A DNA stretch of 64,000 bases from Macrostomum hystrix. Its lineage: Eukaryota > Animalia > Platyhelminthes. The stretch spans positions 3,410,001-3,474,000 of the forward strand of contig CATNEN010000034.1 in assembly GCA_950097015.1 (NCBI GenBank), read 5' to 3'. A program made the translations under genes and the position numbers. Shown in pieces: positions 4,485 to 24,029 of the stretch. The notes below the pieces were generated by a model. That model was given only the letters and a program-made list of their open reading frames with translations. It did not search any database and was not told the DNA's origin. Positions within the stretch are counted from its first letter, which is position 1; each line of letters opens with the position of its first letter.

Positions 4485-5084
4485 CTAAACATCAAAATTT
4501 GAGTCCTTGAATAGCTCGTCGATGCTGAATAATTGGGCCACGCTTGTCTCAGGCGCGGAACCGGGGGCGGATTTAGCGACGAGCGGAGCGGATCCGGGGG
4601 CGGGTTTGGCGATGGGCGGAGCGGCTCCGGGGGCGGATTTGGCGACGGGCGGAGCGGATCCGGGGGTGGATTTGTCGACGGGCGGAGCGGATCCGGGGCC
4701 GGATTTGTCGACGACCAACGAAGCGGATCCAGCAGCAGCGGTTGAGTGTTCAGCAGGGAAGGCCTTTCGCGGATCCTGTGAGCATTCGAAATCGCGCAAT
4801 TTAGCCAGAGTCTCTCCAGCAACCAGGCGACCAGCAACGCCGACGTTCGCGTTGACAGCCTTAGCAGAGGCTGCAGCCGTATTGGCTGAACTAGCGGCCA
4901 AGCGTTTAAAGGAAAACCTTTGACTTGGCTGACTCGGCGGCGGCAGCATCGGAACAATCGGAGCATCGGCTAGATTTCGTTGCCGAAACCGCTGCTGCTG
5001 TTGCTGCTGCTGCTGCAGACACATTATTGATGTCCGCCTGCATCGGGGTGTCTGCATCGATGCCCGGCAATTCAAAATCGTCAA
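4485..5084 (-). other. Alternative-frame ORF that may be the true MCM9 C-terminus (poly-Q, 11-aa repeats, ends QLFSIDELFKDSNFDV)
   Basis: The ORF overlaps the end of the MCM9 exon in another frame. It carries 33-bp coding-like repeats (APPVDKSTPGS) and an FSIDE motif echoing FSIDD in the upstream frame. Confidence 0.4.
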
Positions 5085-6280
5085 TAGAGAAGACTGGCAA
5101 CTGCGAGCTCACGTTGCCAGCGGACGTTTTTTCACTGGAAGCAGCCGAACTACCTTTTCTTGGAACGGAAGCTGCTGGACCGGAAGCAGTAGGAACGGAA
5201 GCTGCTGGACCGGAAGCAGTCGGAACGGAAGATGCTGGACCGGAAGCAGTCGGACCGGAAGCAGTCGGAACGGAAGCAGTCGGAATGGAAGCAGTCGGAA
5301 TGGAAGCAGTCGGAACGGAAGCAGTCGGACCGGAAGCAGTCGGACCGTAAGCGACATGGCCCACCACAATGGGCGCGTCCTGAAACCAGTCAGTCTGAAT
5401 ATTGAACTGATGGGCAGCAAACGAAGCTGAAGAAATTGAATCAGCGAAAATGTTCGTCGCGTCATTGACGTCCAGCATCGATTTGGCGTTCTCCCAGCGG
5501 GTGCTCTCGCCTCCGGCTTCGCCGTCGTCGTCGTGGATTACGTCGGCTACGATGCGTCGACGTTTCACCGCCGATATCGACAGGTTAGGCGTAGTCGAGG
5601 AAGTCGACAGAAAGGATTTACCGCCGCCAGCGCCCCGAAATTCGAGACGCGACAGAGCGAGAATGGGCCGTCCTGTCGACGGCGGCGGCTCAGCAATGCC
5701 ATCGCAATGAGCAGCGCCATCGGCGGTGTAAGTAAGATGATCCAAGCCCAGTGCGGCCAACAGTTGGCGAGCCTCTCGACCAAAATCAGCGTCCGGCTGC
5801 TCCGGAAAGCCAGCCAGAGGGCCAACGCCGACGCCGCCGCCGCCTCCGCTACCACCAATCAAGGCGGCGCCAACCATCGAGGCCTCAACAACGGAGGCGG
5901 CCATTAGGGCGTCCTGCAGAGTGACAGACGAGCGCATCATCAGGCGAGCGTGAGCTTCGGCCAGCCGGATACAGCTCTCCAGCAGGCGAGTGGTGGTTCG
6001 AGAGCCGACGCCGCGCTCAGCGCCGAGCCGGTCGGGCGCCGTGGCCGCTCTCTGCCGCTGATAATAGGCGGTGAGGACTGCGCCAGCCTCCGGCCCGATG
6101 CTCGGATTGAAGCTGCGGATATAGGCGAAATAGGCTTGCAACCGCTCCAGGCTCCAATGCTGCTGCTGCTGCTGCTTCTGTTTCTCGCCTGAATCTAGTG
6201 CACCTGCTGTCCCATCTTGCTGCGCAGCGGGTAGATTCTCTTTCACGTCAGTATCGATATCGTCGGAGTCAGAATCGTCA
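4906..6280 (-). CDS. MCM9: MCM9 helicase, 3' exon (AAA+ lid / C-terminal region plus low-complexity tail)
   Basis: WSLERLQAYFAYIR...LTAYYQRQR...RTTTRLLESCIRLAEAHARLMMRSSVTLQDA matches the MCM9 post-AAA region. The acceptor (cctcaccgcag, ending 6281) is phase 2 and matches the phase-2 donor of the upstream exon. Confidence 0.88.
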
Positions 6281-6364
6281 CTGCGGTGAGGAAGCGGAGA
6301 GAAAAGCATACATTTAGTGCCCATCGGTTTAGATCGATTACAAATTTTAAACTGGATACAGTTT

Positions 6365-9300
6365 TTTACAGTGTCAAATGGTTCCAGTGTCAAATTGGTT
6401 CCAGTGTCAAATGGTTACAGTGTCAAATGGTTCCAGTATAAATTGGTTCCAGTGTCAAATGGTTACAGTGTCAAATGGTTCCAGTGTCAAATGGTTCCAG
6501 TGTCAGATGGTTCCAGTGTCAAATGGTTCCAGCATAAATTGGTTCCAGTGTCAAATGGTTCCAGCATAAATTGGTTCCAGTGTCAAATTGGTTCCAGTGT
6601 CAAATGGTTACAGTGTCAAATGGTTACAGTGTCAAATGGTTACAGTGTCAAATGGTTACTGTGTCGAATGGTTCCAGTATAAATTGGTTCCAGTGTCAAA
6701 TGGTTACAGTGTCGAATGGTTCCAGTGTCAAATGGTTCCAGTGTCAGATGGTTCCAGTGTCAAATGGTTCCAGCATAAATTGGTTCCAGTGTCAAATGGT
6801 TCCAGCATAAATTGGTTCCAGTGTCAAATGGTTCCAGTGTCAAATGGTTCCAGTGTCAAATGGTTACAGTGTCGAATGGTTCCAGTGTCAAATGGTTCCA
6901 GTGTCAGATGGTTCCAGTGTCAAATGGTTCCAGTATAAATTGGTTACAGTGTCGAATGGTTACAGTGTCGAATGGTTCCAGTGTCAAATGGTTCCAGTGT
7001 CAAATGGTTACAGTGTCGAATGGTTCCAGTGTCAAATGGTTCCAGTGTCATATGGTTACTGTGTCGAATGGTTCCAGTGTCAAATGGTTCCAGTGTCAAA
7101 TGGTTCCAGTGTCAAATGGTTACTGTGTCGAATGGTTCCAGTGTCAAATGGTTCCAGTGTCAAATGGTTCCAGTGTCAAATGGTTCCAGTGTCAAATGGT
7201 TCCAGTGTCAAATGGTTCCAGTGTCAAATGGTTCCAGTGTCAAATGGTTCCAGTGTCAAATGGTTACAGTGTCAAATGGTTCCAGTGTCAAATGGTTCCA
7301 GTGTCAAATGGTTACTGTGTCGAATGGTTCCAGTGTCAAATGGTTCCAGTGTCAGATGGTTCCAGTGTCAAATGGTTCCAGCATAAATTGGTTCCAGTGT
7401 CAAATGGTTCCAGCATAAATTGGTTCCAGTGTCAAATGGTTCCAGCATAAATTGGTTCCAGTGTCAAATGGTTCCAGCATAAATTGGTTCCAGTGTCAAA
7501 TGGTTCCAGTGTCGAATGGTTCCAGTGTCAAATGGTTCCAGTGTCAAATGGTTCCAGTGTCAAATGGTTACAGTGTCAAATGGTTCCAGTGTCAAATGGT
7601 TCCAGTGTCAAATGGTTACTGTGTCGAATGGTTCCAGTGTCAAATGGTTCCAGTGTCAGATGGTTCCAGTGTCAAATGGTTCCAGCATAAATTGGTTCCA
7701 GTGTCAAATGGTTCCAGCATAAATTGGTTCCAGTGTCAAATGGTTCCAGCATAAATTGGTTCCAGTGTCAAATGGTTCCAGCATAAATTGGTTCCAGTGT
7801 CAAATGGTTCCAGTGTCGAATGGTTCCAGGGTCGAATGGTTCCAGTGTCAAATGGTTCCAGTGTCAAATGGTTCCAGTGTCAAATGGTTACAGTGTCGAA
7901 TGGTTCCAGTGTCAAATGGTTCCAGTGTCAGATGGTTCCAGTGTCAAATGGTTCCAGTATAAATTGGTTACAGTGTCGAATGGTTACAGTGTCGAATGGT
8001 TCCAGTGTCAAATGGTTCCAGTGTCAAATGGTTCCAGTGTCAAATGGTTCCAGCATAAATTGGTTCCAGTGTCAAATGGTTACAGTGTCAAATGGTTCCA
8101 GTGTCAAATGGTTCCAGTGTCAAATGGTTACAGTGTCAAATGGTTCCAGTGTCAAATGGTTCCAGTGTCAAATGGTTCCAGTGTCAAATGGTTCCAGTGT
8201 CAAATGGTTCCAGTGTCAAATGGTTACAGTGTCGAATGGTTCCAGTGTCAAATGGTTCCAGTGTCAGATGGTTCCAGTGTCAAATGGTTCCAGTATAAAT
8301 TGGTTACAGTGTCGAATGGTTACAGTGTCGAATGGTTCCAGTGTCAAATGGTTCCAGTGTCAAATGGTTCCAGTGTCAAATGGTTCCAGCATAAATTGGT
8401 TCCAGTGTCAAATGGTTACAGTGTCAAATGGTTCCAGTGTCAAATGGTTCCAGTGTCAAATGGTTACAGTGTCAAATGGTTCCAGTGTCAAATGGTTCCA
8501 GTGTCAAATGGTTCCAGTGTCAAATGGTTCCAGTGTCAAATGGTTCCAGTGTCAAATGGTTACAGTGTCAAATGGTTCCAGTGTCAAATGGTTCCAGTGT
8601 CAAATGGTTACAGTGTCGAATGGTTCCAGTGTCAAATGGTTCCAGTGTCAAATGGTTCCAGTGTCAAATGGTTCCAGTATAAATTGGTTACAGTGTCGAA
8701 TGGTTACAGTGTCGAATGGTTCCAGTGTCAAATGGTTCCAGTGTCAAATGGTTCCAGTGTCAAATGGTTCCAGCATAAATTGGTTCCAGTGTCAAATGGT
8801 TACAGTGTCAAATGGTTCCAGTGTCAAATGGTTCCAGTGTCAAATGGTTACAGTGTCAAATGGTTCCAGTGTCAAATGGTTCCAGTGTCAAATGGTTCCA
8901 GTGTCAAATGGTTCCAGTGTCAAATGGTTCCAGTGTCAAATGGTTACAGTGTCGAATGGTTCCAGTGTCAAATGGTTCCAGTGTCAGATGGTTCCAGTGT
9001 CAAATGGTTCCAGTATAAATTGGTTACAGTGTCGAATGGTTACAGTGTCGAATGGTTCCAGTGTCAAATGGTTCCAGTGTCAAATGGTTCCAGTGTCAAA
9101 TGGTTCCAGCATAAATTGGTTCCAGTGTCAAATGGTTACAGTGTCAAATGGTTCCAGTGTCAAATGGTTCCAGTGTCAAATGGTTACAGTGTCAAATGGT
9201 TCCAGTGTCAAATGGTTCCAGTGTCAAATGGTTCCAGTGTCAAATGGTTCCAGTGTCAAATGGTTCCAGTGTCAAATGGTTACAGTGTCAAATGGTTCCA

Positions 9301-9397
9301 GTGTCAAATGGTTCCAGTGTCAAATGGTTACAGTGTCGAATGGTTCCAGTGTCAAATGGTTCCAGTGTCAAATGGTTCCAGTGTCAAATGGTTCCAG
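6365..9397. repeat. 16-bp minisatellite (gttccagtgtcaaatg and variants), about 190 copies, in the MCM9 intron
   Basis: Continuous 16-bp periodicity. Variant monomers (gttacagtgtcgaatg, gttccagcataaattg, gttccagtgtcagatg) recur in higher-order blocks. Confidence 0.97.
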
Positions 9398-10351
9398 ATT
9401 TAGATTCAATTATTTTGTGTTTTTAGATTTTTTTCTAGTATCAAAAACAGAAAAAATTACGAAACAACAAAATATGCTCAGATTTAGATAATTCAGAAAT
9501 TGACATTTAAAGTTTGCAAATTAATTGCACACGGTGGAATAGACGGCTGACTAAGTGTTCGGGAGGCAGGTGGTATGATTGGTCGCTGACTCGCTGTATG
9601 CTTATTTAAATCTACCTTATTTACAATTACTGTACGCTCGCTTCCACTCTGCGCACTCACCTTGTTTCTCTAACCCTCGTTCGCATTGTGCAGTGGCATC
9701 GTCCACCCACCCCCTCCGTTTTAGCCTATTTGCACTGAATTATATAATAAACGTGTGGAGGCTCCCCCCTCCGGGTCAAGTGGTTGGTTAGCGCGATTTG
9801 CCTACCGTTTTGAGCACAGCATAATTGGCTACTAGCTATCGGCCTTTTTTGATTGCTCTAGTACAGTAAGCGAGCGAAGACAAAAGTATTGATCTGTACA
9901 AACAATGACTTACAGATATATTTAATCAAACAGAAGCCCATTAGAATGAGAGCAGACATTGATCCGGCTGTTCAATCAGTGCCCGAAAAACAATTTCAAG
10001 TTAACTGCCATCTGAGCACAAGATCAACAAAAGGACTTTAAAAACTTAAAGGAAAAATTAGGGTAAGATTCAAAGTTCAATGCAGCGAATAAAGCGAACA
10101 AAAAACTCAAAACTGAAATTTATATCATGAGTTTGTTCAAACTAAACCAATTTCTGTAGGAAGTCAATTAGACGATTTGCTCAAATAAGCAAAACCGACT
10201 GAACAAACTCAGCCTAAGAGAATTCATAGACCAAGGGCACACCCACAGCAAACTTTTCTATAAATATGAATCTTCAAACTTGACAAAAATCGCCAAATTC
10301 GAGACATCGCCCTTCTTCTAAAGTGACCAACAGATTAATCCAGAGGCAAAG

Positions 10352-12183
10352 ATGCGAGCCATACTACTCATACTTATCATGCTGCCGTTGCTGGCGGTCT
10401 GTGACATAACCGTAAGTGCTTAGCTACTATTGCACACCTACATTTCCATTCAGGAGTGTAAATTCGCAATCTCATTCGGATTCTTCACGTGTAAAAACTA
10501 ACAGGACGAGCAGCGCGAGAAGATGAAGGAAGCTGAGAGGCTGTACGGACCCTGCATCCTGGAGGGAACCGGATGTCCCGACAACTCCTTCACCTACGAG
10601 AGGATCCAGAGCGAGGTGACCGCGTTCAAGGTCAACCACCCAAGCCTGGTGCCGTCGGAGTGCCTGTGTGAAGAGTCCGAGCGATGCAACCGCGTCTGCT
10701 ACCTGGCCATTGTGAAGCGGTTTCACGCTGGAGTGATTGCGCCTCCGAGCAGCAAGCGAAGCAGCAGCAAGCTGACTGTGAGTAGCCTTCACACAGGATC
10801 GCACGTTTGTTAGATGCACTTGACTTATCGAGTAGGCAAAACTTTTTATTGGTTTTGAAGGACGAGCAGCGCGAGAAGATGAAGGAGGCTGAGAGGCTGT
10901 ACGGACCCTGCATCCTGGAGGGAACCGGATGTCCCGACAACTCTTTCACCTACGAGAGGATCCAGAGCGAGGTGACCGCGTTCAAGGTCAACCACCCAAG
11001 CCTGGTGCCGTCGGAGTGCCTGTGTGAAGAGTCCGAGCGATGCAACCGCGTCTGCTACCTGGCCATTGTGAAGCGGTTTCACGCTGGAGTGATTGCGCCT
11101 CCGAGCAGCAAGCGAAGCAGCAGCAAGCTGACTGTGAGTAGCCTTCACACAGGATCGCACGTTTGTTAGATGCACTTGACTTATCGAGTAGGCAAAACTT
11201 TTTATTGGTTTTGAAGGACGAGCAGCGCGAGAAGATGAAGGAAGCTGAGAGGCTGTACGGACCCTGCATCCTGGAGGGAACCGGATGTCCCGACAACTCT
11301 TTCACCTACGAGAGGATCCAGAGCGAGGTGACCGCGTTCAAGGTCAACCACCCAAGCCTGGTGCCGTCGGAGTGCCTGTGTGAAGAGTCCGAGCGATGCA
11401 ACCGCGTCTGCTACCTGGCCATTGTGAAGCGGTTTCACGCTGGAGTGATTGCGCCTCCGAGCAGCAAGCGAAGCAGCAGCAAGCTGACTGTGAGTAGCCT
11501 TCACACAGGATCGCACGTTTGTTAGATGCACTTGACTTATCGAGTAGGCAAAACTTTTTATTGGTTTTGAAGGACGAGCAGCGCGAGAAGATGAAGGAGG
11601 CTGAGAGGCTGTACGGACCCTGCATCCTGGAGGGAACCGGATGTCCCGACAACTCTTTCACCTACGAGAGGATCCAGAGCGAGGTGACCGCGTTCAAGGT
11701 CAACCACCCAAGCCTGGTGCCGTCGGAGTGCCTGTGTGAAGAGTCCGAGCGATGCAACCGCGTCTGCTACCTGGCCATTGTGAAGCGGTTTCACGCTGGA
11801 GTGATTGCGCCTCCGAGCAGCAAGCGAAGCAGCAGCAAGCTGACTGTGAGTAGCCTTCACACAGGATCGCACGTTTGTTAGATGCACTTGACTTATCGAG
11901 TAGGCAAAACTTTTTATTGGTTTTGAAGGACGAGCAGCGCGAGAAGATGAAGGAGGCTGAGAGGCTGTACGGACCCTGCATCCTGGAGGGAACCGGATGT
12001 CCCGACAACTCTTTCACCTACGAGAGGATCCAGAGCGAGGTGACCGCTTTCAAGGCCAAAAACCCGGCTCTTGTGCCCTCCGAATGTCTTTGCGGAGAGT
12101 CCGAGCGATGCAACCGCGTCTGCTACCTGGCCATTGTGAAGCGTCTCATTGCTGGTGTGATGGTGCCTCCGAGCAGCAAGTGA
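10352..12183 (+). CDS. Nested gene: secreted protein with a signal peptide plus five tandem 6-Cys modules, one per exon (about 468 aa)
   Basis: Exon 10352-10411 encodes MRAILLILIMLPLLAVCDIT (gtaagt donor). Exons 10505-10777, 10861-11133, 11217-11489, 11573-11845 and 11929-12183 (TGA) are all phase 0 with canonical GT-AG. The module pattern is C-x6-C-x28-C-x-C-x5-C-x3-C. Confidence 0.8.
10505..12180 (+). repeat. 356-bp tandem repeat (273-bp exon + 83-bp intron), 4 full copies plus a terminal partial copy
   Basis: Exon starts recur at 10505, 10861, 11217, 11573 and 11929, an exact 356-bp spacing also seen in the ORF track. Confidence 0.97.
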
Positions 12184-12753
12184 TAAAGATAGATTGACAT
12201 CTTATATATGACAAAGACTCAAAAACGTTAGAGCAGGTAGTGTCTGGTATAGACAGAAATATAATGTCGCTTTGTGGCCTACCACTACCACCAAGTCTGA
12301 CCTTACAGCGCGATGCTTAAAATGATGGAATTTTTTTATTTCTATAACACAAACAATAAGTTTTACTTTATGCCTTAAAATAGGCAATTATTCTTATTTA
12401 GTAGTGACACTGGACCCGCAGCCAGCGAGGGGGGCAATTCTGCCCGTTTCGCTGACTCCTGAGCTCACACGCACACAGATACCTTACGCAGGCACAAATT
12501 CACACAGGTGTGTACATCTGCCCTGATCTTTCTCATCGTCAATTAGTGTACACTTTCACTGAGCCTTGGAGGTTGGCCCTCAAGGGCGCAAACTGCACGA
12601 CAAGCAACCAAGCCTTCTCTCAAACAAATGTGGCCTCGCCGCAGAATCGAGCTTAGGGACATTGCTCGGAATTGGTGCAAGAGGCAAACGCGTCAGACCG
12701 CCACTCACCCCAATAGGAGTATTAATAGAAGCAAAGCATGTAGAATGACTCAC

Positions 12754-13402
12754 CGTTCTATAAGAGCAGTGAGCACACGAGAGGACACGGTGGCGTCCCA
12801 TGCCGGATCGCCCCTGTCCAGCAGCACCAACACCAGGTCGAATCTGCTGAGCAGCGGGCTGGCCAGGTTGGTATTGACGCCGAGGCTCTGGCCAGAGTCT
12901 AGTTTGCCATGCGGGTTGGTGGCTGCCAGCACGGAGCAGCGGGTGTTCAGCTTGCAGACTAGGCCAGCCTTGGCGACAGACAGTGTCTGCTGCTCCATGG
13001 CCTCGTGGATGCAGGTTCGGTCGCGTTCGCCAACGGAATTGAATTCGTCGATGCAGCAGACTCCGCCGTCGGCTAGGACCAGGGCTCCGGCCTCCAGGGC
13101 CCATTGGCCGCCTTCGCGAACAGCAGCCGCTGTGAGGCCGGCGGCGCTGCTGCCAACTCCGGTGGTGAGAACCGACCGGCCGGCTAATCGGCTGGCGAAG
13201 CGAAGGAATTGCGATTTACCTGTGCCCGGATCGCCAATTAGCAGCAGGTGAGATTGGCCGCGAGTTCGATACCCGCTTTCGCCGGATTTTTGCACACCGC
13301 CGGCCAGGATTAGTGCGACAGCCAGTTTGGCCAGGCGGAGGCCGCACAGCTGGGGACAGATGCTCGCCAGGATGCGGTCGCGAGCAAGCAGGGGCCGCCT
13401 GC
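12754..13402 (-). CDS. MCM9: MCM9 helicase, AAA+ core exon
   Basis: [14 protein letters not shown]...[19 protein letters not shown] (Walker A) ...[20 protein letters not shown] (Walker B) ...[33 protein letters not shown]...LLSRFDL. The canonical GKS Walker A and the [10 protein letters not shown] segment fit MCM9. Acceptor ctacag, donor gtgagt. Confidence 0.92.
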
Positions 13403-13700: not shown

Positions 13701-14324
13701 TACCTTTAGCTGTCATTACAATCCACACATATGTGTAGCTATAGTATCTGCCGGATATTATTTAAGTCCTGATCAAACCTGTGTCATACGAGTATGAGAG
13801 GAAATGAATTGTCATTCGCTGATCTTCCGACCAAATGTCGGAAGACCAATGCAGCTATTAATAAATTATACAATCCATATGTTAAGCAGGTCTGTGCGGG
13901 TACTCGGCACCCGGTACCTGGATTACCCGATCATTTTTAGCAAAATTACCCGCGGTATCCGGCCGGTACGCGGTTACGCATGGCATTTTCCCTCGGGTAA
14001 TGAGCCTGGGTACGAGTAGTTAATAAAATTCAGACATTAGTCGATTGCGTCATAATATGTTTATCTTTTTATATTGTTTCTATTGAAAAACATTGTTAGG
14101 AAATAGAATAAAGTAGGGGACAAGATGCAGGATTTCCTATAAAGTGAAACCAGAAGTGCTCAAGAGAAGAGAAGGGTAGAGTTGAGGAGAGGAGAGGAGA
14201 GTAGAGTTGAGGAGAGGCTCTCTCAATTCGCCTCTGCCACCTCGTCGTCTACTTGTCTATAAGGCTTAGAAATCTGAAGGGAATTCAAGAGAGCTCTGTG
14301 TATACTTGTAAATCATACTCAAAA

Positions 14325-15091
14325 CCAGCGCGAGGTTCGTTCCCCACTTTTAGTGTGTTGCATGCCGCGATGTCGAACTCGGCGTGTTTTAACTTTCTGC
14401 TGTTCAGAAGTGGCAGTTGAAGCTCTTTGAAGCTTCTGCTTCATGATGACTCCATCTCGATATCGAGCTCTATCCCGCTGTTTCTTCCGCTGCTCCTTTC
14501 GAACTTCGTTGCGGTTGTTTGTTGCCCTATCTTCTGAACCAGTTTTATCCTGAGCGTCGGCTGGCATTGCGTGTAGCTCAGGCATCTTGACAGCGTACGT
14601 GTCTTCACGATGCAGAACTGGTGGATACATGTTGTCAGCAATGTGGTCTGGTCGCGGCTCGACTTCAACCGATTCCTTCTCCAAGCGTGGTGGAAAAGTG
14701 TAGGGATTTGGAAGGGCATCTTTTCTAAGTCGAGCTGAACGTCGTTCGTGTAGTGGGCAGGAGTAATCGGTTTCTTTAAAATGCAGACTGCACACTTTCA
14801 GCCTCCGCTGCTGCCGCACAAAATTCAAGTCAACATCGCGTAATTTAAGTATCTCTATCCAACGAACTGCTACCTGGTCATCGCTTGGAAATTTGTGTAG
14901 ATGGACTGCAAATCCATGCACTGAAGCTGGAGTGTCCTCAGTGTAGTATAGCAGGCAGCTGCACAACAAGCGTGGCTACTAAGACAGTTGATGATCAGTT
15001 CCATGGCTAACGTGCGAAGCAGCAGCTCACAGCCAGCGAGTTTTGAGCGAGCGATAGACCATCAAATAAATTTTCTATCTAACTGTCTATG
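14325..15091 (-). mobile_element. 5' piece of a P-like transposon: putative CATAGAC terminus and frameshifted THAP domain
   Basis: HLHKFP...RWIEIL...KVCSLHF...RLRKDALP is a THAP signature. The N-terminal CCAAAC (ATG at 15004) lies in a different frame, one frameshift away. A basic coiled-coil-like region follows. The minus strand starts CATAGAC at 15091 (terminus inferred). Confidence 0.75.
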
Positions 15092-15192
15092 GGCAAAACT
15101 CAGGGTTTTCGCGGCGACGGCTGGCGGACGCAGTTTCTATTGCAAATTCGTTGAGTGACCAATCTAGGTCACAGATTCTATATTATCTACAA

Positions 15193-15963
15193 ATAGCCTA
15201 CAAATACCTGCGACAACAGCCCGACGCTGCGCTGCCATCGCTCACTGCGCTCAAGCGAAGTACTCGATTGTTCTTTGCGGAGCCTGGGCCCTGCAGGTTC
15301 ATCACCATCGCCGAGCTCAAGAGATCAATTGCAGAACGACCCACGCACGAGAGGATCGCTACACTCAGCTTGGATGGAATGCGGATCTCACCCTCGATTC
15401 GATACGATGCGGCACGAGATGTCATCGTGGGAATCACTCCGAGCTCCGCATCCTTGGAAACAGCGAAGCCGATCAACCAAGCGGTGGTGGCGCACCTGCG
15501 AGCTGTGGCTGCGCCATGGAAGCAGCCTATCGCATGCTACTTCGTCAACCACAATCAGAGCCAGGCGCAGTTCCAGGCCAGCATCGAGGACTGCCTGCAT
15601 GCGGCGGACCAGGCAGGAGTGCGCGTGAAGGCACTCGTCTGCGACCAGGAGCCAACTCAATGGGCACATATTAAGAAGACTGTGACCAACTCTCAGCCCA
15701 GCTTCGCCCATCCAACAACTGGAGAAGCAGTCTTCGTCGTTCTGGATGTTCCTCACTGTTTGAAGAACACACGCAACTGCCTTCTTAAGTACGACATCGA
15801 GTTTGACGGGACCAAGCGTGCGAGCTGGCTGAATATTCGAGAATTCTACGAATCAGAAAGCAGGAGAGTGTTGAAGCTGGCTGTGAAGCTGACTGATGCG
15901 CAAAGAGGATGTTACTCTGCCTTTCTGCCAAGAGCATTTGCGCGATGGCAACGCGCGAGCTAG
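15193..15963 (+). pseudogene. P-element/THAP9-type transposase core fragment
   Basis: AYKYLR...LPSLTALKR...IATLSLDGMRISPSIRYD...DVIVG...WKQPIACYF...LVCDQ...VVLDVPHCLKNTRNCLL are P-superfamily transposase motifs. The frame degrades and stops at 15963. Confidence 0.85.
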
Positions 15964-16356
15964 GCGACTCTTCGTCAGAACTCACCTGCATCACTGGTGC
16001 AGGCAGAGAATGAGGGCGATCCGGAGGGAGCGGGATTGCGTTGCAGCTAAGCGCAAGTTGAGCAAGTTGCAGTGACTTGCTGTGAGTTCTGTATCGATTT
16101 TGCTGAGAATTAAAGCTTAATCAATCGTCAAATTTGATGATATGTTGCACTCCGCCCTTTGATATTTTGTTTTTTGCATTGTTCGTCCCTGATGATGGGC
16201 TCACTGTATCTATCAGGTCCAATATATCGTGAAAAAATCAGATAGGAATAAAAGCAAGCATTTAATTGCTGATCGCTTGCTCCATAGGCACTTACTTGTC
16301 TGTGGTCAAAATTCCTGGGTTTTCGCGCAGCGGCCAGCTGGGGTATGAGTGACGCA

Positions 16357-20330: not shown

Positions 20331-21018
20331 AGAACAGGCTTAGCTTGTGACTGTATATTTTGTGTTGCAACTTTAAGTTGAGTGCTAGGCCACTAGTGCT
20401 ATAGCCATTGCAATATAGCTAACAACTTTTGACTTACTATTACTTCTACTATCTTTTTTACTCTAATATCTCAAAAGGGTTCTTTTCCAATAATTTCCCA
20501 AAATTCCATTTTTTGTTTACTATTTCTTTGTGCTGCAACCCCAAGAAAATGGTCACACAACCCACAGGCAAAATATAAATACTGGCCTAATGGCTCAAAT
20601 CAATGTTATTCATTATTTAGCTAAAAATTATATTTTTCTTAAAATAGTTATTTGAAACCATTGTTACAATCATTTTTACTTTTATATCATTTATATCATG
20701 TATATCATTTATACTAAAACCTGTATACTTTAACTTTAATTTAGTAAGCCTTGATTGAATTTTCTGTACACTGAGCCATGCAAACATCTTAAAGTTTTCA
20801 ATTGTTACAAGTGTATCTTATCTCTCTAGTTAAATTTAAACATGCATAAAAATAGTTATAGCTATAATAAAAAACTACATTTTAGTTGTGTTATATTGGC
20901 CTTTGTGTATGCTAAAACTAAAAAACACAATTATACAATAGCATTTTTACACTTCATTTTGCAGCTAGTAGTTACTTAAAGCACAGAATTATACTATTAG
21001 ACATTGAAAACGCATGTC

Positions 21019-23952
21019 ATGAACCTGGCAATGCAAAGTCTTGTCACTCGCCCGCGCGTTGCCATGCTGGTGTGCGCTGTATTTGTGTACATAGCAACCG
21101 CCTCTGCAATCCTGGCACTATTGCTTGCTTTTGTTGGTTATGCCGCTGCTGGCGGTTGGCGTTTTCTGCGAGTAGCTGCGCTGACTTTGCCGCGCGATGC
21201 ACGCGGCCTCATTGTACTACTGCGCTCGCGCTGGATGCTGCGCCGCATGGTGACACAGCGGCGAGGCATCGCTCAGCTGTTTTGCACTACGGCTGCTCGA
21301 CATCCGGACCGGGTCTGCTTCTTGTATGAGGACCAGAGCTGGACTTTCAAACAAGTTGACGAATATTCGAATCAGGTAGGCTCCTCGATAACCAGTGGTT
21401 CTAGACGTAGAATAAAGATAGAGTATAAGTTACACCTAGTTCAGTTGGGCTTACAAAGGATTTGTACAACTGTTCAGTCTGTGGACATTTAGGGCCGCTT
21501 CACACCTATAAAAATTCACACGTTTCTTGGTGAACTGAATCGCTAAGGAGTTACGTGACTTGCTAAAGGGCACAAAAAGCTTCCCTGTGTTGAGATTCGA
21601 ACTCTAGACCTCTTGAACTCTCGGTCAGAAGTCCAAAGCTCTAACCACTAAACTGAGGTTGGGTAGCTGAGAAGCCAGTTTAGATAGGCAATAAGCTACT
21701 ACTTAGATGCCGCATCGTGTTTAACTATCAATTCACTCCAGGTGGCCAACTTGCTTATGGAGGCCGGCCATCGTCCCGGCCAGGTGGTTGCCATCCTGGC
21801 TGAGTCCAGGCCCCAATTCGCCTGCCTGTGGCTTGGCGCAGCCAAAGCCGGTATTATCAGCGCCCTGATCAACTCCAACCTGCGCTCACAGTCTCTGCTG
21901 CACTGCCTCCACGCTGCCGACGCTGTCAGCCTGGTGTTCGGCGCTGAGCTGGCCTCCGCGGTGCTGGAGGTGACGCCAAACCTGCCAGCCGGCCTGCGGC
22001 TCTACTGCCTGGGCGGCGGCTCCGGCGGAGTGCCGAACGCGGCCGACCTAGATGCTCTACTGTTAAGAGCGTCCACTCTGCTGCCGTCCTATCCGGTGAA
22101 GCAGGGGCCCAATGCCAAGGACCGACTGTTCTATATCTATACTTCGGGTGAGCAAATTTTAACATGTTTGCATGTCTACCTCCTGGTAGCTGAATGAATT
22201 CCGCTAAACTCAATCTGCACAGGCACTACCGGCCTACCGAAGGCGGCTGTGATCTCCCACACTCGCTTCGCCATGATGTCCAACACTGTCGGTCTGTTCT
22301 TTAATCTGTGCTCTGGCGACATCTTGTACGACTGCCTGCCGCTCTATCACACTGCTGGCGGCATTCTGGGCATCGGACAGGTGACTTTGCGTCCACTCCG
22401 TCCATAAAACACTTCACTTATTGGCCACTGCATTAGTCCATCTATTAATTATCAACCCATTCACCTATCAACCCATTCACCTATCAACCCATCCACCTAT
22501 CAACCCATTCACCTATCAACCCATTCACCTATCAACCCATCCACCTATCAACCCATTCACCTATCAACCCATTCACCTATCAACCCATCCACCTATCAAC
22601 CCACCCACGTATCAACCCACCCACGTCATATTGACGTCATTTGAGTAAGTCGTCAATAAATCCCATCGAATCTCCAGGCCTACCTGCGTGGCGTCACGGT
22701 GGTGATCAAGCGCAAGTTCTCAGCCTCAGCCTTCTGGGACGACTGCGCCCGCTACCAGTGCACCGCGGCTCAGTACATCGGCGAGATCTGCCGCTACCTG
22801 CTAGCCCAGCCCAGCCGGCCTAGCGAGAGGCGCCACCAGGTCCGCGTCATGTTCGGCAACGGCCTACGGCCGCAGATTTGGCGCGAATTTCAGCGCCGCT
22901 TCGGCGTCGGCCAAATGGGCGAATTCTACGGCGCCACCGAGTCCAACTGCAACATGGTCAACTCTGACAACACGGTTGGCGCAGTCGGCTTCGTCAGCCA
23001 GATCGCTCCCAGCGTCTACCCGCTGCGGCTGATTCGCATCGATCCCGACACCGGCGAGCCGTTGCGTCAGCCCGGAAGCGGCCTGTGCATCCCGGCTGGA
23101 CCCGGCGAGCTCGGCGAACTCATCGGCAGCGTTGTGCCCGGAGACGCTATTCGTGGAGTTGACGGCTACGTTTGCAAGGCGGCCACCGAGAAGAAGATGC
23201 TGCGCCATGTGCTCACTGCTGGCGACTGCTACTTCTCTACTGGGGACGTGCTGGTCATGGACGAGCTCGGCTATATGTACTTTAGAGACCGGACAGGCGA
23301 CACATTCAGGTGGAAGGGCGAGAATGTGTCTACGTCTGAGGTGAGGTCTATGGAATATTCCACTGTGCATTCCAAACTGACTGCACCATCTCTATGGAAT
23401 ATTCCACTGTGCATTCCAAACTGACTGTTCCATCTCTATGGAATATTCCACTGTGCATTCCAAACTGACTGCACCATCTCTATGGAATATTCCACTGTGC
23501 ATTCCAAACTGACTTCCATCTCTATGGAATATTCCACTGTGCATTATAAACACACTGGCACCCCTCCCGCCCAGGTGGAGGCCTGTCTATCCAATGTACT
23601 CTCCTTAGCCGATTGTGCTGTCTTCGGCGTAGAGGTGCCCGGTAACGAGGGTCGCGCCGGCATGGCCGCCGTCGCCGATCCCGAAGGCCGCGGCGTCGAC
23701 GTTACCAGGCTATCCCAGCAGCTGCCCCGCCTGCTGCCAGCTTACGCCAGGCCGCTGTTCATTCGCATTGTTGGCCAGATTGAGTCCACCGGCACCTTCA
23801 AGATGAAGAAGACAGATCTGAGGCGCGACGGCTTCGACCCGGACAGGTGCGCTGGCGATCCTGTGTACTACCTGGACTGCCGCACTGGCCAGTACCAGCC
23901 GCTTGACTCTGCCTCCTTTGCCGCCATTGTGCAAGGCGAGATTCGCTTCTGA
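21019..23952 (+). CDS. FATP: Long-chain fatty acid transport protein / very-long-chain acyl-CoA synthetase (SLC27A1/4-like), about 653 aa
   Basis: Exons 21019-21375, 21742-22147, 22223-22380, 22678-23340 and 23575-23952 splice in frame. The AMP-binding motif [14 protein letters not shown] spans an intron. Also EFYGATE, and the FATP motif [31 protein letters not shown]. Confidence 0.95.
21533..21650 (-). mobile_element. tRNA-derived CORE-SINE-like fragment in FATP intron 1
   Basis: gtgacttgctaaagggcac...gagattcgaac...ctctaaccact resembles the reverse complement of a CORE-SINE head, with A-box tggttagagc and B-box gttcgaatc. Confidence 0.55.
22450..22620. repeat. 16-bp intronic minisatellite (acctatcaacccattc)
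   Basis: About 10 copies in FATP intron 3. Confidence 0.9.
23347..23545. repeat. 44-bp intronic minisatellite, about 5 copies
   Basis: tctatggaatattccactgtgcatt starts at 23347, 23391, 23435, 23479 and 23521, in FATP intron 4. Confidence 0.9.
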
Positions 23953-24029
23953 CTTGCGCTGTTTGCACTTTTGGTTTCTGGACGATCTTTCTAGCATTAG
24001 TCTTATGGGTGTTTAAGTATTCCTGCCCA

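Follow-up and report, generated by a model that had tools for sequence, protein, structure and literature searches.

What is encoded by the tandem array of cysteine-rich exons that lies antisense inside an intron of MCM9 in the flatworm Macrostomum hystrix, and how did it come to hold five nearly identical units? The array was pointed out by a first-pass annotation of 64,000 nucleotides (nt) of the assembly GCA_950097015.1 (contig CATNEN010000034.1, positions 3,410,001 to 3,474,000 of the forward strand). This whole stretch is called the window in the following, and positions without a contig name refer to it. Taken together, we lean towards a nested gene for five secreted domains found only in Macrostomum, which was recently amplified and whose product would be cut at Lys-Arg (KR) pairs into peptides of ~10 kDa. 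That a real gene of an orphan secreted family is present can be said with high confidence.

The five-module gene lies on the + strand and consists of a signal-peptide exon and five module exons, all in phase 0. Exon 1 (10352..10411, 60 nt) starts with an ATG at 10352, and ends at a GTAAGT donor. It encodes a signal-like peptide of 20 residues, which starts basic and has a hydrophobic core of 14 residues and a junction between AVC and DIT. It is followed by intron 1 (10412..10504, 93 nt, GT..AG), the sequence of which is unrelated to that of the inter-module introns. Module exons 1 to 4 (10505..10777, 10861..11133, 11217..11489 and 11573..11845) belong to one type, here called type A. Each has 273 nt, and all four code for the same protein of 91 residues with six cysteines and the C-terminus PPSSKRSSSKLT. 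Module exon 5 (11929..12183) is of type B, encodes 84 residues followed by a TGA stop, and departs from type A at codons 40-56 and 72-79. Every module exon has an AG on its 5' side, the inter-module introns run from GTGAGT to AG, all introns are GT..AG, and the spliced open reading frame (ORF) has 468 codons for amino acids. The cysteine framework of each module is C-x6-C-x28-C-x-C-x5-C-x3-C. Four linkers of the form PPSS-KR-SSSKLT separate the modules, and the protein ends in PPSSK. Dibasic KR pairs are cleavage sites of prohormone convertases. Upstream of the gene lies a box, TATAAATA (10261..10268, +), which is kept in a paralogue on contig C35 described below. The first-pass annotation had proposed a signal-peptide exon with five symmetric phase-0 exons for modules of 84-91 residues, and had given the same cysteine spacing, linker and C-terminal end. 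Each of these points was confirmed.

Ten public RNA runs from four studies match parts of the window, and four of these were aligned to positions 10200-12400. All four consist of assembled contigs, which collapse repeats and drop minor variants. The contigs start at 10307-10323. In them 10411 is joined to a module start, 10777 to 10861 and 11845 to 11929, each across a GT..AG intron. A fourth joint, running backwards in the window, connects a module end to a module start. The introns, intron 1 included, have no RNA contig coverage. In run X7 the contig depth, which is a poor gauge of expression, reaches several thousand. The splice pattern is confirmed in RNA for the gene pair formed by the window gene and its C35 paralogue, with at least two modules joined in mRNA. 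Regarding the six-exon splicing proposed in the first-pass annotation, the exon 1 to module and module to module joints were thus recovered, while a five-module transcript was not, as the contigs collapse the repeat; for the same reason they do not tell how many modules a transcript has or whether exons are skipped.

To describe the family, a profile was made from an alignment (A1) of 19 modules. A search of the M. hystrix genome with this profile found 31 modules at 18 loci. Nine loci have one module, seven have two, the C35 locus has three and the window gene has five. The five window modules, which were included in building the profile, match it with E values of ~3e-24 to 5e-24, and family membership is independently backed by single-sequence matches to paralogues and to proteins of M. 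lignano. Residues C17, C24, C53, R63 and C65 are invariant in the alignment. C55 and C61, the fourth and fifth cysteines, are both absent from the second module of the M. lignano protein P0001 (P0001:113-193) and from that of its M. hystrix orthologue (L014:3588-3824(-), at C35:~1537605). In both species the module is thereby reduced to a variant with four cysteines. Because both cysteines were lost together, in one evolutionary event of an orthologous module pair, this suggests that C55 and C61 form one disulfide. The signal-like N-termini of window exon 1, the C35 paralogue, L014 and M. lignano P0001 are also alike, ending in ...A[LV]C.

Outside M. hystrix, an exhaustive HMMER search of 1.84 billion cluster representatives gave six matches. 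Three of these are true, all of them M. lignano hypothetical proteins, with two modules in P0001, two in P0003 and one in P0004. A profile word-index search of 5.8 billion proteins added one further M. lignano protein, P0009; the word-index protein search with a single module gave no match. The weak matches from the representative library, P0002 (a tick protein), P0005 and P0006 (metagenomic repeat protein), were rejected as unrelated, and hhalign of the family profile against P0005 gave a probability of 0.1. In these two collections the outside relatives are therefore four clusters of M. lignano hypothetical proteins only, and the domain appears so far to be confined to the genus Macrostomum. 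The true members PAA82461/PAA58127 (P0001/P0007), A0A1I8G7C1 (P0003), PAA50938 (P0004) and PAA46481 (P0009) share the six-cysteine framework, the motifs P-C-[IV] and E-R-C-x-R-x-C-Y, and an N-terminal signal-like peptide. Identity is at 26-41%, with E values of 1.5e-8 to 5.8e-5 for one module and 2.3e-19 for the profile. Unlike the window gene with its five near-identical modules, they have one or two divergent ones. All are uncharacterised, and a direct orthologue of the window gene is not among them. The window array is not a chance ORF, because the frame is held over five units, the cysteine framework is kept at 18 paralogous loci and the RNA contigs carry the predicted joints.

Two other loci deserve mention. 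At C38:31191238-31194679 (L018) there is a tandem pair of single-module paralogues in which a KR after the domain is followed by a short hydrophobic peptide. These peptides have Gly at their end, with or without added basic residues (LFGKKG, FIGRRN), and M. lignano P0004 ends in FFGFQG; such tails look like convertase and amidation signals. At C34:6838500-6851500 (L036, L037) near-identical genes for another small secreted cysteine-rich helical protein are clustered, with a repeated element scattered among them. The protein has a signal peptide and ~7 cysteines and ends in ...GCIKL. This cluster did not match the family profile and represents an unrelated family.

The structure of the module was then modelled with AlphaFold2. 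A single module sequence gave a predicted local distance difference test score (pLDDT) of 73. With the family alignment the pLDDT was 84 and the predicted template modelling score (pTM) 0.75, and the model was a three-helix bundle with helices at residues 2-20, 31-44 and 59-74 and a short turn at 26-29. The ~75-residue domain is thus predicted to be a three-helix bundle held by three putative disulfides. Linker residues 81-88, the KR included, have a pLDDT <50 and are disordered and exposed in the model. The second dibasic pair of the module (residues 71-72) falls within helix 3. Comparison of both models with the PDB by Foldseek gave E >3 throughout. VIA-align against 48,161 chains reached a best Z of 4.9 (Cas13d helices, CARD domains), which is a generic helical match. 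In the ESM Atlas, the shape search gave template modelling (TM) scores of at most 0.52, to unrelated families, and the feature search gave nothing usable. At the sequence level, no Pfam family was found for the modules, the 19 aligned members or the full-length M. lignano proteins at E up to 10; a search of PDB sequences gave nothing with one module and a single chance match (E 0.36) with the profile. The remark of the first-pass annotation that no named family fits the cysteine spacing therefore holds for Pfam, PDB sequences, Foldseek, VIA-align and the ESM Atlas alike.

The setting of the gene gives some insight into its history. On the − strand, the P-loop exon of MCM9 (12753..13295, Pfam MCM 1.1e-65) has a GTGAGT donor at ~12752 that opens the host intron; among solved structures this exon matched MCM9 best (E 1.5e-74), the next MCM following at 3.6e-52. 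The next MCM9 exon (4906..6281, −, Pfam MCM_lid 1.4e-14) encodes the AAA-lid and a long C-terminal tail, and has an acceptor at ~6281 with a polypyrimidine tract and AG. The intron between them spans ~6282-12752, that is ~6.5 kb. With MCM9 exons at 12753-13295 and below ~6281, the five-module gene is therefore nested antisense in this intron and flanked by − strand MCM9 exons on both sides, which agrees with the first-pass annotation. Half of the same intron is occupied by a 16-bp satellite (6369..9397, 3 kb; consensus CAGTGTCAAATGGTTC, 189 copies, 89% match), which creates long spurious ORFs in several frames.

The array itself was detected by Tandem Repeats Finder at 10503..12180 (+) as a 356-bp exon-plus-intron unit with 4.7 copies, 98% match and a score of 3177. 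Units 1-4 differ at two sites only, both synonymous, and the inter-module introns of 83 nt are identical to one another. Between unit 5 and units 1-4 there are 25 differences, which form two patches at codons 40-56 and codons 72-79. In general, types A and B differ at 25-30 sites, clustered in these two patches, with about as many synonymous as non-synonymous codons. A second version of the locus was found on contig C35. Here C35:1338927-1346716 aligns in reverse orientation with the window from 13638 down to 4260, at ~90-96% identity. Besides the satellite, this segment has the MCM9 exons for the P-loop and the lid, and its copy of the nested gene is intact. We considered whether this might be a haplotig and rejected it: because only ~7.8 kb are shared and the flanks are unrelated on both sides, the C35 segment is read as a ~7.8-kb segmental duplicate. 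The partial MCM9 copy on it is probably a pseudogene fragment. The nested paralogue (C35:1340383-1341500) has three modules in the order B, A and A/B-mosaic, with the same KR linkers as the window gene. Its signal exon differs from the window signal exon at two nucleotides, the variant positions 10357 and 10370, where the window has A. The 200 nt upstream of the window gene, the TATAAATA box included, are 98% identical to those of this expressed paralogue.

The mosaic make-up of the modules is a sign that gene conversion or unequal exchange has taken place between them. In the ancestral gene there were probably two or three modules, as in the rest of the family, and the four identical A units of the window are the product of a very recent amplification. 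In the process we propose, unequal crossing-over or gene conversion multiplied the 356-bp exon-plus-intron unit, which gave the four identical type-A modules ahead of a type-B module that is older.

What would then become of the product? Following the signal-like peptide, the protein would enter the secretory pathway. A kexin/PC-type convertase would cut the KR pairs in the disordered Pro/Ser linkers, and a carboxypeptidase would trim the ends. This would release five peptides of ~9.7-10.0 kDa, so that the module number would act as a dosage device. The computed masses of the trimmed peptides are ~9.69, 9.96 (three copies) and 9.95 kDa, with isoelectric points (pI) of 5.1-7.5. A signal peptide with four KR linkers in stretches predicted to be disordered is the architecture of convertase-processed precursors, and genes with a convertase P-domain were found in the M. 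hystrix genome. In M. lignano, a PC2 homologue has been described (PMC4490696). For KR processing of the five-module protein we would put the chances at about even.

The competing view is that the protein is stable and uncleaved, with five beads on a string in a secreted chain of ~50 kDa. The KR pairs would then be incidental, and repetition would serve avidity or a function like that of a matrix or mucus. Several points weigh for it and against cleavage. The family also has members with two domains that are stable proteins, and in several two-module paralogues the linker lacks a dibasic pair (for example C2:2617073-2617552 and P0001/L014); inter-module cleavage is therefore not a family trait. 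The Arg codon of the linker (CGA) and the terminal stop (TGA) are one base apart, which could explain the pair: when a basic C-terminal tail became fused to the following unit, the linker KR may have arisen as a by-product. The site also lacks the Arg at P4, and furin cleavage is not predicted. Against the uncleaved chain stands the position of the KR in the sole disordered stretch of the model, together with its presence in all six linkers of the window gene and the C35 paralogue. The nearest single-module paralogues, too, have KR a few residues past the domain, and among the nearest paralogues basic C-terminal tails, or a basic pair just beyond the last helix, recur (PPAKR, PIGKR, PQSKR, PDKRR, PSKK). 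We regard an uncleaved chain as the less probable reading. A different view concerns the domain itself, which could be a divergent saposin-like or WAP-type domain. The automatic UniRef name of P0001 is 'Saposin B-type domain-containing' and that of P0009 is 'WAP domain-containing', and prosaposin is likewise a cleaved precursor with secreted, helical three-disulfide domains of ~80 residues in tandem. The two names differ within one family, however, which points to unspecific cysteine-pattern matches. With E values of up to 10 allowed, neither the 19 modules nor the full-length M. lignano proteins matched Pfam SapB_1/SapB_2 or WAP, and no Pfam family was found for P0009 and P0013. The cysteine spacing is another one, with a framework covering 49 residues instead of ~80 and six cysteines where WAP has eight, and the module is helical. 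The fold-search rows contain no saposin or WAP chain, Foldseek E values being >3 and the best VIA-align Z of 4.9 well under the level expected for helical bundles. This view is accordingly very improbable.

Another possibility is that the window copy is silent or barely expressed, or that the assembly called too many units, so that the functional gene would be the one at C35:1340383-1341500. Several observations from the RNA contigs weigh in this direction. All assignable X7 contigs are exact substrings of the three-module C35 mRNA and none of the window mRNA; the pieces come from the C35 exon-1 variant and its junction, from the first module (type B), from a type-A stretch and from the 3' untranslated region. 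Window-type exon 1 was not seen in the contigs of X1, X2 and X7. It occurs in one run only, the sediment metatranscriptome X3 (depth ~4), which matches the window at 10309-12043. There it is joined to a module start with a marker combination that is not the window's, and this module variant is present in neither of the two assembled copies. The X3 contig implies a third allele, so natural populations would carry further alleles or arrangements of the array. Among the RNA contigs of the four runs none is diagnostic of the five-module copy, and the module copy number is that of the assembly. Set against this, the ORF, splice sites, TATA box and 200-nt promoter of the window copy are intact, with 98% identity to the expressed copy. 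Because contig assemblies lose minor variants, the five-module transcript is not shown to be absent. As to the unit number, units 1-4 fall into three haplotypes that can be told apart, which speaks against a simple stutter in the assembly, and the PacBio reads behind the 42-contig assembly (PMC10468722) are much longer than the array of 1.8 kb. A silent or over-called window copy seems unlikely to us; that the window copy is expressed with all five modules we consider an evenly balanced matter.

Returning to the reading of a processed polyprotein, it can be compared with known systems. Nematode polyprotein allergens (NPAs) of the ABA-1 type have units of ~15 kDa that are cut at furin-type R-x-K/R-R sites. 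The window gene resembles them in having a secreted precursor with many tandem small helix-rich units and basic convertase sites in between, a layout that raises the yield of product from each transcript. Unit size, cysteine content and cleavage site are different. The likeness is one of architecture only, with no NPA match in Pfam or PDB sequences and no such chain in the Foldseek and VIA-align rows. In multi-copy cysteine-rich precursors (toxins, pheromones, plant defence peptides), the units are usually <50 residues, beta-rich or knotted and often cationic. A signal peptide, repeated disulfide-rich units, dibasic spacers and a labile copy number are common to both, whereas the window unit is a predicted helical bundle of ~75 residues that is acidic to neutral. 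Insect odorant-binding and chemosensory proteins are also small, secreted, helical and disulfide-stapled, and the chemosensory proteins likewise begin with C-x6-C; Foldseek E values of 4-9 and TM scores of 0.2-0.27 give no evidence of kinship. By architecture, the nearest systems would thus be nematode polyprotein antigens, prosaposin and multi-copy cysteine-rich precursors, and by membership the unnamed Macrostomum family only.

Regarding function, a toxin, antimicrobial, adhesive or seminal-fluid role is a matter of speculation. A classical cationic antimicrobial peptide is unlikely, the released modules being acidic to neutral (pI 5.1-7.5). The size and predicted fold argue against a classical neuropeptide, and our preferred guess is an abundant gland-secreted extracellular effector or ligand carrier. 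In the literature we found no proteomic or tissue data for the family and no paper with the identifiers of the M. lignano homologues, nor were these mentioned in the searched paper supplements. The main text of a paper on a seminal-fluid in situ screen mentions neither cysteine nor repeats.

The remainder of the neighbourhood contains other coding sequences. Just past the MCM9 P-loop exon, at 14319-16000, ORFs resemble a THAP domain and a P-element/THAP9-like transposase. At 21000-24000 (+), several exons resemble an AMP-binding acyl-CoA synthetase or fatty-acid transport protein, an assignment made from ORF translations only (a YIYTSG motif and a C-terminal domain).

In conclusion, the gene belongs to a secreted domain family that has no name and is defined here. 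The family occupies 18 loci in M. hystrix as well as several in M. lignano, and it escapes Pfam, PDB sequence and fold searches and the feature and shape searches of the ESM Atlas. The locus catches the family in mid-expansion, from one or two domains to three and five, by duplication of an exon-intron unit. Its nested position and its co-duplication with part of MCM9 give an example of an intronic gene spreading by segmental duplication. Because lineage-specific cysteine-rich secreted families and exon amplification are common in invertebrate genomes, the locus will be of moderate general interest until its role is demonstrated. Sexual selection, regeneration and bioadhesion are studied in Macrostomum as a model genus, which makes a secreted protein that is highly transcribed and diverges fast a natural candidate for functional work. 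Should the KR linkers be cut, flatworms would have in this gene their counterpart to the polyprotein antigens of nematodes. More tentatively, the module may have a disulfide-stapled three-helix fold that is confined to Macrostomum and has not been described before. The gene pair would then be a young array in which the number of units, three versus five, sets the dosage of an abundant processed ~10-kDa effector. If this is true, unit number would determine the effector copies per transcript, and the effector could be a gland product for mating or hypodermic insemination, chemical communication or defence. The locus would then be a live example of the birth of an effector gene and of copy-number tuning by unequal crossing-over within a host intron.

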